From positions 3,348,001 through 3,412,000 of the forward strand of contig OX337236.1 in the NCBI GenBank assembly GCA_946965045.2: a stretch of DNA of 64,000 bases. The letters run 5' to 3'. The DNA is from Epithemia pelagica (lineage: Eukaryota > Protista > Bacillariophyta). Both the position numbers and the translations under genes were made by a program. Under the pieces are notes generated by a model, which searched no databases, had not been told where the DNA came from, and saw nothing but the letters and a program-made list of their open reading frames with translations. Shown here one piece after another: positions 6,121 to 62,769 of this stretch (position 1 is its first letter; every line of letters begins with the position of its first letter).

Positions 6121-7338
6121 ATGACAACGACACTGCAAAAGCAAGCATGGCAGTCGGGCCTTGTCCTGTTAGACGATGAGACACCGGAATGGAATTTCGA
6201 GGACTGGCCTTCTCTTGAGGGAGAAGGGCGTTATCGTCATGCTTCGGTCGTACTGAATCATACCGATAACAACCAAGAACAAACCGTCGTCGTGTTGGGT
6301 GGATATCGAACAGGTCAAGGCGAGCTAGATTCCATTCTTGTATTAAACTTGGCAGAATCAAACAAGCAGTGGCGCGAAGGGCCACGCATGAACCAGAAAC
6401 GTGATGGACATGCCGCTGTTGTGTGCAATGGAGGCATTTACGTGATGGGAGGAGACAATGGAGGTTCAGATTTGAATTGCATGGAACGAATCGACGCCAA
6501 TGATTTGCTTCGATCATCTTTGACAACCACCACCACGCATGAGAGCAGTTGGACGGCATTGACATGTCGCTTATCAACGCATCGATTTGGATGTTGTGCT
6601 GTTGCGGTTCACAACCGATACATCGTTGTAATGGGTGGCCATAACAACGATGGTTATTTGTCGTCGGTGGATATTATTGATACCAGCAACCACACTGTCA
6701 TTGAGGGACCATCCATGACTGTTCCACGACAACTTTGTGGCAGTGCGGTGATTGGCCACCGCATCTTTGTCGTTGGAGGTTGGAACGACAATGGCCATCT
6801 TGACTCGGTGGAGTATTTGGACTATGCAACACCCCTTGACAGTGATGGGACAAAAAAGGAGACTGGCTCGACATTCATTTCTTTCTCGTCCACTTGGATC
6901 ACTCATCCTGATTTGGTTCTTTCCAACCCTAGAGATTCTTGTGCAATGGTTGCCGTGGGATCTTGTCTGGTGGTGGCAGGAGAACGAGGCAATCCAACCG
7001 TTGATGTCTTGGATACGAACCGCAACCGCGTGTGGAATCTCTCACAATTCGGAAATGACCACAATCGCCGCGAAGGATGCAGTATGGTGACTGTTGCCAA
7101 TCAAGTTGCCGTGATTGGTGGATGGCGCAATCCTACCTGTGTGACATTGCCACTTATGGATAGGAATTCGTGGTGTTTTCGTCGACTTTGTGAGCAGCAA
7201 TCGAACGGATGGTATCATTCTCTTAAAGGAATAGGTATCCGAGATGCTGATATCTCACCCTTCTTGACATTGGCATCAGCACGTCAACGCGCAAGGTCCA
7301 ATACTCAAAGTGGTGATGAAGGGGCCGATGAAGCCTAG
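6121..7338 (+). CDS. Kelch-repeat beta-propeller protein K2
   Basis: Repeated Kelch blades (hhhhGG...W...M...R..H/C); ATG at 6121, 2 codons into the listed GTG-start ORF; family N-terminus MTTTL..QAWQSGL. Confidence 0.95.
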   Translation: MTTTLQKQAWQSGLVLLDDETPEWNFEDWPSLEGEGRYRHASVVLNHTDNNQEQTVVVLGGYRTGQGELDSILVLNLAESNKQWREGPRMNQKRDGHAAVVCNGGIYVMGGDNGGSDLNCMERIDANDLLRSSLTTTTTHESSWTALTCRLSTHRFGCCAVAVHNRYIVVMGGHNNDGYLSSVDIIDTSNHTVIEGPSMTVPRQLCGSAVIGHRIFVVGGWNDNGHLDSVEYLDYATPLDSDGTKKETGSTFISFSSTWITHPDLVLSNPRDSCAMVAVGSCLVVAGERGNPTVDVLDTNRNRVWNLSQFGNDHNRREGCSMVTVANQVAVIGGWRNPTCVTLPLMDRNSWCFRRLCEQQSNGWYHSLKGIGIRDADISPFLTLASARQRARSNTQSGDEGADEA

Positions 7339-7509
7339 CCGTTTATTTCTCGAGTGGTTGACTTGTTTTCTACATTCGATTGCAATACTACAACCTAGTA
7401 GGTAGTTACTCAAAAGTAGAAAGAACATGTTGTGCAAGATAGAAGGTGCTTGCTTGATGTCAAAGATGTGGAAAGAACGACCAAATTTTTTGTCTCTACA
7501 AGTGGTAGT

Positions 7510-7891
7510 ATTAATACTTCCCGGTGTCGAGTCCTTTCAAGGAGGGAACGCCCGGCGCGGAGGGTAGAATGACGAGGAGGGCAATGGTCGAGGAGGGCGC
7601 ACGCCCGACAAGACAGTTGCCCGTCGAGTCATTCTCCCGACAAGCCGGGCGCGCCCGACGCGAGAGGACGGCCAGACACAGGGAAGTAGTAAACTTACTC
7701 CCTATCAAGCTGTGTAGGTAGTGAGAAATTCCTGGAAGCCATGTCACAAAGTGTCACACAAGTGTCACACAAGTGTCACACACGAGAGGGAAACCGCGCG
7801 ACTCGCACGAAACTACTTCCCGGTTGTACAAAAACTTCCTAGTGTAGTATAAAAATGTGAGACGAACTACCTACACAGTCTGGTATGGAGT
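7510..7891. mobile_element. Unclassified ~380-bp insertion flanked by TAGT direct repeat
   Basis: Absent from the paralogous spacer at ~59445 (caagtggtaatgccacc); TAGT at 7506-7509 and 7892-7895; internal direct, inverted and 11-bp tandem repeats. Confidence 0.6.
7741..7782 (+). repeat. 11-bp tandem repeat (GTGTCACACAA) x~3.8
   Basis: atgtcacaaa gtgtcacacaa gtgtcacacaa gtgtcacaca. Confidence 0.9.
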
Positions 7892-59451: not shown

Positions 59452-61539
59452 TGCCACCAGCATGGTTGTGCGACCGAGAGACAAGAATCTAGGGCTTTGT
59501 GGTGGCATCATGGGACACAGAGTCATCGTCCATGGATTGGTAGCTGTATGGCAGGGAGAAAGGGAAAGTTTCCCATCGATGTCGTAGTCAAGGGCAATCC
59601 GCTTTGTCCTCGCCATTTGGTGTTCCTGACGATTGAATAGTGCAGAGTAGTTCCCTTGTTCGTGACAGGGCAAATCCATACATTTTTCTTGACATGGCGG
59701 GTGCTGTGACTGTCAAGGGTGCTCCATCCTGTCGTTTCTTGGCTTGGGATGATGGTGTGACGACACAATTCTGCTGTGGACCACGACCATTGGCGAATCA
59801 TATTTGACCATCCAAACAATACCTGAAGAACGCCAAGGGAGACTCTCCGCGTTGGTTGATTGCGGTATTGGCAGGATTCTTGTCTGGGTTGAGTTGCGGA
59901 CCCTGTTGCATCGGTGTGTTCCTCCTCTGTATATGAACCTGGATAATGTTCTTGCTGTTCTGCTGCTGCTTCGGTGCTGGTGTTAACAACAACTCTTTGG
60001 TGAAAAAAGGATGGAACCAGTGTTTGCCCTACTACAAAAGTGGAAGACTCCGCATCGACTATTGGCCTTGCATGATTTCTCGTTTTGTTCGTTGGGTTGT
60101 GATTTGTTTTTTATAACACTCTGGTTCATGTTATTGTGGCTGGAGTTTGTGCCTTTGCTCGTGTTCTTGATGAGATGGGTGGTGCTTGGTTCCTCTTTCT
60201 TTGAACCACAAGTCACTCGACACGGTAAACAAAGTAGTTGCAGTGCTACTGTGTTGGTGGTTTCTGTTTGTGGTGCTGGTGGGCCGTGTTCAAAAATAAC
60301 CAACTGGTTGTGGAAGTCGTCATTTGGTCCATCAGTTTTCGTTGCAACGATCAAAACCCTTCATTCCTTAGCAGTGGAAATCACGAGAGGGAGGGCAAAG
60401 CGGGATGCCTCTGTTGTGCATGCGACAATTGTTGTTGTTTGGGTCCTGCTGAATTTGCTCTTCGTGTCGTGCTGCTCCACGAACGAGCAGGACGGCTGTT
60501 CCCATTGTTGTTGTTTGGGTGTAGCGGTGGTTGTTGTTCTTGTTGTTGTCGGCATTATCGTAGTACAATCGAATGACTGTGTTGCCATTGCTCCTTTCCC
60601 GCCACGAACCACGAGTTTCGACATCTGTTGGTCGTGCTCCTTGTATGGCTTGGTTCATGGTCTCTTGTGGTCAATGAATCCGACAAAAGGACGAAACGGG
60701 TGGATTCCAATGTCTGATGATGAGAGAAGCAGTACGACGAAAAACACGACAAGCGAAAACCTTGTGGACCTGATGTTGTCCGCTTCTCTGATGGTTCTTT
60801 TTGGAAATCGAGCATGGTTGGTTGGTTGCTGCTTCTCTACATTCCTCGTCCGTCGTCTTGTGAAGAACGAATCATTATTGATCGAGCAAAGATGGAATGG
60901 AACCGTCCTTGACAATTAAGGGGAAGGAAGGAGTCTCTGGACTGACGCAACTGGGTCGACAGTGGTTGAATTAAACTTGCTGCTGGTGCGATCGTCGTTT
61001 TGTGGCAGTGGAACGAGAAATTCATGGCCTTATCGGCACAGGTGCCAAATCCACCAATCGCGGTGCTTCGAGGATAGTTTTGTGCCGTATATCGAGACTG
61101 AAACCAGTCCATCCGCATTCTCTGATGTGAATTGAGACGCCAGGCACGAGACAATGCAATTCACATTCGTCAACAGTCCGGATGTACCCATAGTTGGAAT
61201 CCAATCCATGATGTTTTGTTTGTATTTGGGCAAAAGATGTGTGTGTGGTGTTATGTACGTACCCGACAAAAGCACTGGCTCGAAAGCTTCCACGTGTAGT
61301 AGTCAGACGCCTACCTCCGATCGCACATGAATGTAAGGGTAGGTCGCGTGTGTGTCGTGCTTTCTGTTTTCTAACCACTGAGTCACTAATCCTCATGATT
61401 CCCCCGCTGGGGCTTAGAGTATAGTACTCTTCTTTTTCCAGTCCACACCCATCCGAGCAGCCCACTGCAATCAACACAGTCAGTGTGTGCTCCTTTGATC
61501 CTCATAAATGCGCTGCGGTCAACAAAAGGAAGACTGAGC

Positions 61540-62769
61540 ATGACTCTGAAAGAACAAGCATGGCAGTCGGGCCTTTTCCTTTCAGACGAGACAGCAGAAT
61601 GGAATGAAAACGACTGGCCTCCTCTTCAGGGTGGATGGCGTTATCTTCATGCTACGGTCGTACTCGATCATCTCGACAAGGAACTCCACAACGACAACAA
61701 CAACGGACAAACTGTTGTCGTGTTGGGAGGACATCAACAAGGTCAAGGTGATGTCAATTCCGTTCTGTTATTGAATCTGGCAGACCCAGACATGCAATGG
61801 CGAGAGGGTCCGCCCATGAACAAGAGTCGTGAAGGACATGCCGCTGCTGTGTGCAACGGAGCCGTCTACGTGATGGGAGGATACGATGAAGGTCCATTGG
61901 ATTCTATTGAGCGAATCGATGCCAATGATTTGCTGCAATCACCCTTAACAACCAGCAACAAACATGAGACGCATTGGACGACATTGACATGTCGCTTATC
62001 AACGACAAGAAATGGATGTTGTGCTGTTGCGGTGCACAACCGATACATTGTTGTAATGGGTGGATGGGATGGAAGGCAAAGGTTGTCGTCGGTGGATATT
62101 ATTGATACCAGGAACCACACTGTCACTCCGGGGCCAAGCATGGCTGTTCCTCGATCTTTTTGTGCCAGTGCGGTCATTGGACACCGCATCTTTGTCGTTG
62201 GAGGCCAAAACACTGATGACTATCTTGACTCGGTGGAGTATTTGGACTTTGCAACACCCTCTGACAATGATGAGACAAAAAAGAAGACTGGATCAACATT
62301 CATTTCCTTATCGTCCACCTGGACCACTCATTCTGATTTAGTGCTTTCCAATGCACGAAGTTCTTGTGCAATGGTTGCCGTGGGATCTTGTCTGGTTGTG
62401 GCAGGAGGATGGGGCAATTCAAACGTGGAAGTCTTGGATACGAACCGCAACCGCGTGTGGAATCTTCCACCATTCGGAAATCACCGTGCTGGATGCAATA
62501 TGGTGACTGTTGCCAATCAAGTTGCCGTTATAAGTGGCTTTGGCAATCTTTCCTGTGCAACATTTGGAATAATCGACAAGAATACGTGGTGTTTTCGTCG
62601 TCTCTGTGAACAGCAATCGAACGGATGGTATCATTCTCTTGAAGGTACGGGTATCCATGATACTGATATGTCACCCTTTTTTTCCTCGACATCCGGGTGT
62701 CTTTTGGGGGAAGGAATGAATATCCAACATGCTGATATTTCGAGCAAGGCCGGAGACACGCCGTGGTGA
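61540..62769 (+). CDS. Kelch-repeat protein K14 (chimeric, frameshifted tail)
   Basis: Kelch blades; ATG 61540; tail joins two tail types and lacks 32 nt relative to K12. Confidence 0.93.
   Translation: MTLKEQAWQSGLFLSDETAEWNENDWPPLQGGWRYLHATVVLDHLDKELHNDNNNGQTVVVLGGHQQGQGDVNSVLLLNLADPDMQWREGPPMNKSREGHAAAVCNGAVYVMGGYDEGPLDSIERIDANDLLQSPLTTSNKHETHWTTLTCRLSTTRNGCCAVAVHNRYIVVMGGWDGRQRLSSVDIIDTRNHTVTPGPSMAVPRSFCASAVIGHRIFVVGGQNTDDYLDSVEYLDFATPSDNDETKKKTGSTFISLSSTWTTHSDLVLSNARSSCAMVAVGSCLVVAGGWGNSNVEVLDTNRNRVWNLPPFGNHRAGCNMVTVANQVAVISGFGNLSCATFGIIDKNTWCFRRLCEQQSNGWYHSLEGTGIHDTDMSPFFSSTSGCLLGEGMNIQHADISSKAGDTPW

Follow-up and report, generated by a model that had tools for sequence, protein, structure and literature searches.

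A tandem array of Kelch propeller genes

The window, i.e. the whole 64-kb stretch of DNA that was analyzed, carries 14 Kelch copies arranged head-to-tail on the + strand, as identified by tblastn and translation (Table 1). K1, K5 and K6 are partial copies, and in-frame stops are found in K6, K8 and K13. A tandem duplication of ~900 nt contains both K5 and K6, the latter being 91% identical to K2 over the 5′ flank and the first ~150 codons. The recombination analyses took in the 11 full-length copies, which show a pairwise nucleotide identity of 75–85%. A search for family members gave 483 matches, indicating a family of hundreds of members. TIR-only and PLD/HKD-like genes sit in the same arrays as the Kelch copies.

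Table 1. Kelch copies of the array (positions in the window).
Copy	Position	Strand	Description	Basis
K1	2..502	+	C-terminal part of a Kelch copy, truncated at the start of the window	tblastn, translation
K2	6121..7338	+	intact Kelch gene	
K3	10113..11294	+	intact Kelch gene	
K4	22434..23621	+	Kelch gene, tail divergent	
K5	30283..30741	+	N-terminal Kelch fragment, truncated pseudogene	
K6	31183..31700	+	N-terminal Kelch fragment, stop at codon 11	
K7	32336..33460	+	Kelch copy	
K8	35365..36567	+	Kelch copy, tail with two in-frame stops	
K9	39397..40614	+	intact	
K10	45019..46221	+	intact	
K11	50417..51631	+	intact	
K12	53907..55124	+	clearest mosaic	
K13	58081..59451	+	in-frame stop at 58705–58707, terminal stop lost	
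K14	61534..62769	+	Kelch copy	

Pfam analysis of K9 and K12 gave Kelch_1 scores of 107–128 bits in several stretches (cut-off 20.1) and detected Kelch-type families only, with no BTB/BACK, F-box, NB-ARC, NACHT or other signalling or effector domain in these two proteins. The N-terminus ahead of blade 1 comprises about 20–40 residues, and the conserved C-terminal tail that follows the propeller is predicted to be disordered. The AF2 model of K9 is a six-blade propeller with six sets of strands A to D and pLDDT values of 85–96 across most of residues 20–350. Its best natural Foldseek matches are the Kelch domains of KLHL12, KEAP1 and KLHL20 (TM about 0.79 by target). Sequence matches to Kelch domains of this type reached E values down to 1e-19 to 1e-25, and a search of the ESM Atlas returned generic Kelch clusters only. 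The positions of high entropy lie directly after each GG and just ahead of each strand A. In the predicted structure these hypervariable loops are the B-C and D-A loops, which form the usual ligand-binding face, while the scaffold is conserved. Substrate binding in KEAP1 uses the B-C and D-A loops.

The paralogs do not follow a single tree

The preliminary description held that the paralogs are mosaics unexplained by one tree, and the DNA-level analyses bear this out. The PHI test on the 11 full-length copies yielded z values of −15.4/−15.3. A GARD-like scan preferred eight segments and lowered the AICc from 13747 to 13201 (a gain of 546). In AU tests, the segments rejected the ML trees of the other segments in 55 of 56 cases, and six of the eight segments rejected the global tree at p<0.05. 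Furthermore, site permutation revealed 16 pair-specific fragments at p<0.01, ten of them at p<=5e-5. The pairs K10-K13, K7-K12, K12-K14, K3-K13, K4-K10/13, K9-K11, K7-K14 and K7-K8 reached p<1/5000 to 1/20000.

These patterns could in principle arise without any recombination, either by convergent selection on amino acids, given that the hypervariable loops may be under selection, or, if rates vary, by ancestral states persisting in some copies and not in others. We therefore simulated the family 40 times on the single ML tree, keeping the real site rates in place. The PHI statistic of these simulations stayed near zero (z=0.13±1.05), and significant fragments were essentially absent: nine observed pairs carried fragments at p<0.001, versus 0.03 in the simulations. 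Moreover, pS was 0–0.15 within the tracts versus 0.26–0.39 outside, and because synonymous divergence collapses in this way, convergence is excluded. Taken together with the rejection of a common topology by the AU tests, this leaves an account without recombination hardly any probability.

Mosaic structure of individual copies

Eight diagnostic amino-acid tracts had been listed beforehand as shared in mutually incompatible patterns, and each of them was found exactly in the copies named. At the nucleotide level these tracts are 92–100% identical, versus 67–81% for the median pair over the same columns. Five lie within fragments that each reach significance in the site permutation (p<=0.0004), namely those of K9-K11, K7-K12/K7-K8, K12-K14, K4-K10/K13 and K3-K13. 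The three short ones (ARYGH with K9, LLQSPLTTSNKHE in K9-K14, and GGYESS... in K9-K12) are 95–100% identical but of insufficient length to reach significance by themselves (p=0.05–0.64).

K12 is a composite of several paralogs. It is K7-like at 53907–54092 and 54168–54362, K14-like at 54456–54584 (127 nt, 99.2%; K14 counterpart at 62083–62211) and K9-like at 54777–54821; the last stretch is identical to K9 40267–40311 and too short for significance on its own. The composition claimed for this copy is thus correct for its 5′ end, middle and later part. The supposed K3-like tail shows an identity to K3 of only about 81%, and we discarded it as a recent tract: it reflects the class of 3′ flank common to K1, K3, K12 and K14. 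The 5′ flank of K12 belongs to the K7 class. K7 and K12 are 96–100% identical over the intervals −632 to +150 and +248 to +430, and within this block the identity drops to 70–83% at +158 to +230.

In K13, the string of informative sites reads K10, then K3, then K10 again. K10 and K13 are 98–100% identical from −1070 to +690 and 78–93% beyond; the internal K3-like patch (58897–59130) matches K3 10908–11141, and homology of the K10 type returns downstream of the stop codon, in a region without any K3 homology. Smaller patches were mapped in other copies. K4 22794–22862 is 100% identical to K10 45385–45453, K7 is K8-like at 32768–32851 and K14-like at 33047–33136, K14 is K7-like at 62245–62334, and K9 is K11-like at 39406–39612, K11 being its partner over the first 74–80 codons.

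In a family of hundreds of members, an assembler might have joined reads of different paralogs into chimeras, and four public runs (X1–X4), which share about 50% of the 31-mers of the stretch, offer only unitigs of 100–400 nt, too short to span the junctions. However, the patches are 65–380 nt long and 99–100% identical within sequence of 75–80% identity, i.e. far shorter than long reads, and the ctgNNNNl-type contig names together with a contig of 451 kb suggest that the assembly was indeed built from long reads. In addition, the same K10/K3 mosaic is carried by another contig, which was assembled independently and is 98.6% identical (1.4% of sites differ), and the variant letters of this second copy appear in the public runs. 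An assembly artefact is accordingly a very improbable source of the mosaics. Apparent joints shown by the unitigs (e.g., 54783 to 58950, with 10–17 other letters between) were also considered as rearrangements and dismissed; they correspond to other family members that share the scaffold flanks and carry a different loop.

Exchange in register, without regard to blade boundaries

The preliminary description further called the mosaics blade-scale and ascribed them to a reshuffling of propeller blades. If blades were true modules, as are the WD repeats of the Podospora NWD genes, exchanged segments should be bounded at blade edges or should have moved between blade positions. Within the coding region the tracts measure 65–381 nt, equivalent to about 0.4 to 2.5 blades, so their size is of the same order as one blade; with the 5′ flank counted in, they extend to about 1.8 kb. 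Their 16 edges, however, fall uniformly across the phases of a blade (Rayleigh p=0.88), and all six blade positions are aligned in 11 of the 11 full-length copies. Different blades, whether within one gene or between genes, have a normalized nucleotide similarity score of 0.07–0.08, compared with 0.06 for shuffled controls and 0.56 for blades at the same position. Since different blades have no DNA similarity, all exchange must be in register, and exchange between blade positions was ruled out. Blade-scale is hence apt as a measure of size and not as the unit of exchange, and we give modular blade shuffling scarcely more than a nominal chance.

Probable gene conversion and crossover junctions

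Segmental exchange between paralogs, by gene conversion or by crossover, had also been proposed, and traces of both modes are visible: internal patches on the one hand, and recombined flanks and a duplicate of the K14 region ending inside the gene on the other. This duplicate, L002, is collinear with the window over about 5.2–6.3 kb only, and its homology stops inside K14 at about 62,210–62,400. It may be either the allelic region of the other haplotype or a paralogous copy. The two regions are otherwise ~99% identical over 4.5 kb, and 12 of their 53 differences fall within the 75 nt of a single patch (61759–61833). We found no donor for this patch in the DNA of the window, L001 or L002. At the protein level, P0068 and P0096, which are encoded outside the window, match the window version of the patch (29/30 in overlapping windows).

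The K10/K3/K10 order of K13, the dip in K7-K12 identity and the K14-L002 patch all have the geometry of gene conversion, with recipient-type DNA on both sides. The mixed flank classes of K12 and the L002 duplicate ending inside K14 point instead to intragenic junctions left by crossover or duplication. As expected of gene conversion, the trees conflict along the gene and compatible sites are clustered, the pair-specific tracts show synonymous collapse, and patches have recipient flanks on both sides. For most tracts, donor and recipient are indistinguishable.

On the basis of the assembled sequence, we consider it highly probable that the paralogs are nucleotide-level mosaics produced by repeated non-allelic homologous recombination within a very large Kelch family. 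The majority of events would be short non-crossover conversion tracts, and additional ones would be segmental duplications or unequal crossovers with junctions inside genes. A position in one copy would replace the same position in another, with ends anywhere relative to the blades. Because each tract would place between one and three sets of loops against the background of another copy, recombination would multiply the combinations of loops at the binding face. As a mechanism, such recombination is ordinary. The reshuffling may have been favored by selection for variety in what the family binds: dN/dS is 1.4 at codons that were picked by amino-acid entropy, a partly circular choice, and 0.51 family-wide.

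A more specialized scheme would treat the array as a set of cassettes from which mitotic conversion makes new propellers within a clone, as in antigenic variation or in chicken immunoglobulin genes. Some tracts are indeed very recent (100% identity over 127–190 nt versus a background dS of about 0.42), pseudogene copies are present, and a single clustered patch sets the ~99% identical duplicate apart. Yet each copy possesses its own upstream region, an arrangement unlike a single expression site with silent cassettes, no evidence of within-sample variation was obtained, and the tracts differ widely in age (pS 0 to 0.15), which fits germline events that accumulate. Programmed or somatic diversification is thus improbable, and ordinary non-allelic recombination remains our preferred reading.

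Biological meaning and comparison with known systems

Gene conversion among clustered paralogs is a classic source of new specificities, as in plant NLRs, the MHC, fungal NWD genes and parasite antigens. The presence of this signature in a family that numbers hundreds of stand-alone Kelch propellers suggests that the diatom maintains a large repertoire of binding proteins under active reshuffling, and the locus offers a concrete entry to the question of how diatoms recognize viruses, bacteria or mates. One may go further and imagine a recognition or immune-like repertoire whose diverse faces are kept by selection, in which the TIR-only and PLD/HKD-like genes of the arrays act as partners or effectors and some of the conversion is mitotic; as a whole, this joint reading is speculative and rather unlikely. 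Our literature search, on expanded Kelch families in diatoms or on gene conversion among Kelch genes, retrieved nothing relevant and no paper on the family.

Interparalog sequence exchange is established for plant NLR clusters such as Arabidopsis RPP8 (PMC6771003). Like the Kelch array, plant NLRs consist of tandem and dispersed paralogs with repeat-type binding domains, in which conversion and crossing over yield mosaics and high diversity. The Kelch family differs in having a propeller in place of the LRR, in lacking NB-ARC or signalling domains, and in being much larger (on the 483 matches given above). The NWD/HNWD WD40-repeat genes of Podospora anserina, which function in non-self recognition (PMC1805685, PMC2873952), also encode beta-propellers with hypervariable positions of the interaction surface reshuffled between family members. 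In Podospora, however, the repeat units have nearly the same DNA sequence, are swapped within and between genes, vary in number and accompany a NACHT/effector domain, whereas the Kelch blades lack mutual DNA similarity, are fixed at six, exchange strictly by position and come with no NACHT or effector domain. Finally, the BTB-Kelch adaptors KLHL12, KEAP1 and KLHL20 share the six-blade Kelch fold, and the variable loops described here are the counterparts of the KEAP1 B-C and D-A loops. Unlike the BTB-Kelch and F-box-Kelch proteins, the array copies (K9 and K12 in the Pfam analysis) have no BTB/BACK or F-box domain, only a short N-terminus and the conserved, predicted-disordered tail, and in contrast to the BTB-Kelch adaptors they have undergone a massive lineage-specific expansion into tandem arrays.

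The Kelch array and neighbouring elements

A tblastn search with K10 recovered the 14 head-to-tail Kelch copies (K1 to K14), all on the + strand, at the positions from which they had been numbered. Uninterrupted ORFs of about 375-410 codons run from the conserved start in eight of them (K2, K3, K4, K7, K9, K10, K11 and K12). K14 has an open frame without an ATG at that start, its longest ORF beginning at a GTG at 61483; K8 contains two in-frame stops, both in the tail; K13 is interrupted mid-gene (Table); K5 and K6 are N-terminal fragments, and K1 is truncated by the window edge. 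The TGA of K13 reads TGG in K10 and in L002, a second contig (ctg1237l) with a K13/K14-like duplicate, while the K13-type copy of L002 (L002 6541-7740) has a stop in the tail; public runs show only G at 58707. K5 and K6 (29772-31700) form a tandem duplication of about 900 nt (79.5%) immediately upstream of K7, and K6 with its own 5′ flank is 91% identical to K2. The 11 full-length copies share 75-85% DNA identity, the K10/K13 pair reaching 94.6%. The family is very large: 483 matches were found, on many large contigs of the ENA assembly ERZ21939226, the best 120 of the 483 at 61-78% identity.

Between the Kelch copies lie other elements (Table). The two PLD/HKD-like ORFs belong to a 3.1-kb duplication (2251-5406 and 26648-29778, 96% identity), and the DNA 5′ of the first ORF (1659-3275) shares about 84.5% identity with the upstream DNA of K10 and K13. 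The 302-aa ORF is conserved at 96-100% in the L002 duplicate (L002 8471-9373), with diverged copies at 8404-9166 of the window (74%) and L002 1936-2370 (94%).

Table. Features of the Kelch array and tracts shared by pairs of copies (pS, synonymous differences per synonymous site)
Feature	Position	Strand	Remarks
Copia-type retroelement	14495-20614	+	between K3 and K4; 620-aa gag-like ORF and 1416-aa pol ORF, one frame
Stop between gag-like and pol ORFs	16355-16357	+	one stop
PLD/HKD-like ORF, two copies	3321-4091 and 27711-28481		256 aa; PLDc_2, weak match, E=4.6e-5
340-aa ORF between K10 and K11	48739-49761	-	weak TIR (TIR_2 E=2e-4, TIR E=3.4e-4), both below curated cut-off
302-aa hydrophobic ORF between K13 and K14	60011-60919	+	unannotated, no Pfam match
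K13 mid-gene stop	58705-58707	+	one in-frame stop; terminal stop lost too
Conserved C-terminal part	about 40414-40611		K9 residues 340-405; corresponding part in other copies
K12-K14 tract	codons 186-228		pS inside 0.00
K7-K12 tract	codons 1-52		pS inside 0.00
K3-K13 tract			pS inside 0.04
K4-K10 tract			pS inside 0.04
K9-K11 tract			pS inside 0.04
K9-K12 tract	codons 284-315		pS inside 0.09
K7-K14 tract	codons 240-293		pS inside 0.15

Segmental exchange between Kelch copies

The preliminary description had recognised the Kelch copies as mosaics of each other from eight diagnostic peptide tracts. This observation is confirmed: all eight are present exactly in the copies named, and their nucleotide identities are 92-100%, whereas the median over all pairs for these alignment columns is 67-81%. 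Five fall within individually significant fragments; the three short ones (ARYGH with K9, K9-K14 and K9-K12) are 95-100% identical and too short to be significant alone (p=0.05-0.64).

The proposed origin by recombination is supported by PHI, pair fragments, segment trees and synonymous sites. PHI gave z=-15.4 on 340 informative sites, and 0 of 2000 permutations were as low. A GENECONV-style scan with site permutation yielded 16 fragments at p<0.01, ten of them with p<=5e-5 (65-381 nt). An exhaustive GARD-like scan on a 48-nt grid preferred eight segments (AICc 13747 to 13201); in AU tests the ML trees of other segments were rejected in 55 of 56 comparisons and the global tree by six of the eight segments (p<0.05). 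As a no-recombination control, 40 alignments were simulated on one global tree, each site retaining its posterior rate from the real data. These gave a PHI z of 0.13±1.05 (minimum -2.7) and 0.03 significant pairs per alignment, against -15.3 and 9 for the real data. Convergence by amino-acid selection cannot yield such tracts, because synonymous divergence collapses inside them (pS 0.00-0.15, versus 0.26-0.39 outside for the same seven pairs); the tracts reflect shared DNA ancestry.

The triplet string of K13 follows K10 nearly throughout to codon 280, K3 over codons 281-363 and K10 from 373 (p<1/20000), and that of K12 alternates K7, K14 and K9 blocks. The K7-like 5′ part and K14-like middle claimed for K12 hold, and its K9-like stretch is suggestive; the supposed K3-like tail was discarded as a recent tract, being only 81% identical and reflecting a 3′ flank class common to K1, K3, K12 and K14.

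Conversion and crossover-type or duplication junctions are both visible. Three patterns speak for conversion. Relative to the gene start, K13 shares 98-100% identity with K10 between -1070 and +690 and 95-100% identity with K3 between about +811 and +1040; K10-like sequence resumes beyond the stop codon and reaches +1330, in a region for which K3 lacks any homology. The K3-like segment is an internal patch. Between K7 and K12, an identity of 96-100% over -632 to +430 drops to 70-83% at +158 to +230. L002 matches window 57,700-62,200 at about 99% identity, and 12 of the 53 differences along this stretch are packed into 75 nt of K14 (61759-61833). A crossover-type signal is seen in K12, which joins a 5′ flank of the K7 class to a 3′ flank of the K1/K3/K14 class; K2 and K3 share a 5′ flank class and differ in 3′ class, and the L002 duplicate stops inside K14, at about 62,210-62,400. 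The non-coding 3′ flank of K1, K3, K12 and K14 measures 1.3 kb (356-1679, 11130-12507, 54997-56370 and 62696-63816) and is in places better conserved (K12-K14 80-98%) than the adjoining coding DNA (about 70-80%). Exchange partners lie 3-48 kb apart and so are not neighbours only. Many 30-residue windows have their closest counterpart in family members beyond the window, either on other contigs or in another part of the contig that carries the window. Together, the sequences point to ordinary interlocus gene conversion with duplication or crossover.

Indirect evidence argues against the mosaics being an assembly artefact. The patches are much shorter than long reads, and the contigs, by their names and sizes, probably come from a long-read assembly. 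Moreover, the K10/K3 mosaic of K13 recurs in the L002 copy, which was assembled separately, diverges at 1.4% of sites and is disabled by another stop, and the L002 variant letters are those seen in public runs (6,000 nt queried; four runs share about half of the 31-mers, as 100-400-nt unitigs).

Tract edges and propeller blades

Blades, the six repeat units of the propeller, had been taken as the units of exchange, which is not supported. The 16 tract edges are uniform over blade phase (Rayleigh R=0.09, p=0.88). Exchange between blade positions was likewise rejected: in comparisons within and between genes, different blades scored 0.07-0.08 at the nucleotide level, against 0.06 for shuffled and 0.56 for same-position blades. 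Since the edges are unphased, the blades dissimilar and all full-length copies aligned across all six positions, exchange is ordinary in-register homologous recombination; "blade-scale" is valid for tract size only.

Propeller fold, loops and tail

Pfam searches of the proteins matched Kelch-type families only, with no signalling domain. From an alignment of 98 family sequences, AlphaFold2 models K9 as a six-blade propeller (pLDDT 85-96 for most of residues ~20-350), nearest among natural proteins to the Kelch domains of KLHL12, KEAP1, KLHL20 and LZTR1. Confidence is very low in the C-terminal tail (353-405). A nearly invariant motif follows blade 6 (W351, C352, F353, L356, Q359, N362 and W364 in K9); beyond the motif the sequence is first basic (KRAR-type) and at its end acidic. 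This tail could be a candidate for docking or localisation.

In KEAP1-type Kelch domains, the B-C and D-A loops between blade strands make up the substrate-binding face. Family-wide entropy is maximal right after each GG doublet (B-C loops) and 2-4 residues ahead of each strand A (D-A loops). At the 50 highest-entropy propeller codons of the window copies dN/dS is 1.4, a figure inflated by their choice on amino-acid variability, versus 0.36 in the scaffold (0.51 overall); it is therefore consistent with diversifying selection, not proof of it. With each 65-381-nt tract, one to three sets of loops are placed in another background, so that recombination multiplies loop combinations, and we infer selection for such multiplication.

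Comparison with known systems

Literature searches yielded no paper on a comparable expansion of Kelch genes in diatoms. The exchange process matches that between paralogs in plant NLR clusters such as RPP8 (PMC6771003), and the outcome is like that in the Podospora NWD genes, where hypervariable WD40 propeller repeats are reshuffled (PMC1805685). However, the Kelch copies have neither the near-identical repeat units nor the variable repeat number that define the Podospora genes, and differ from both systems in the absence of any signalling domain. The family is an undescribed case within a known class of fast-diversifying, recombining binding-protein arrays.
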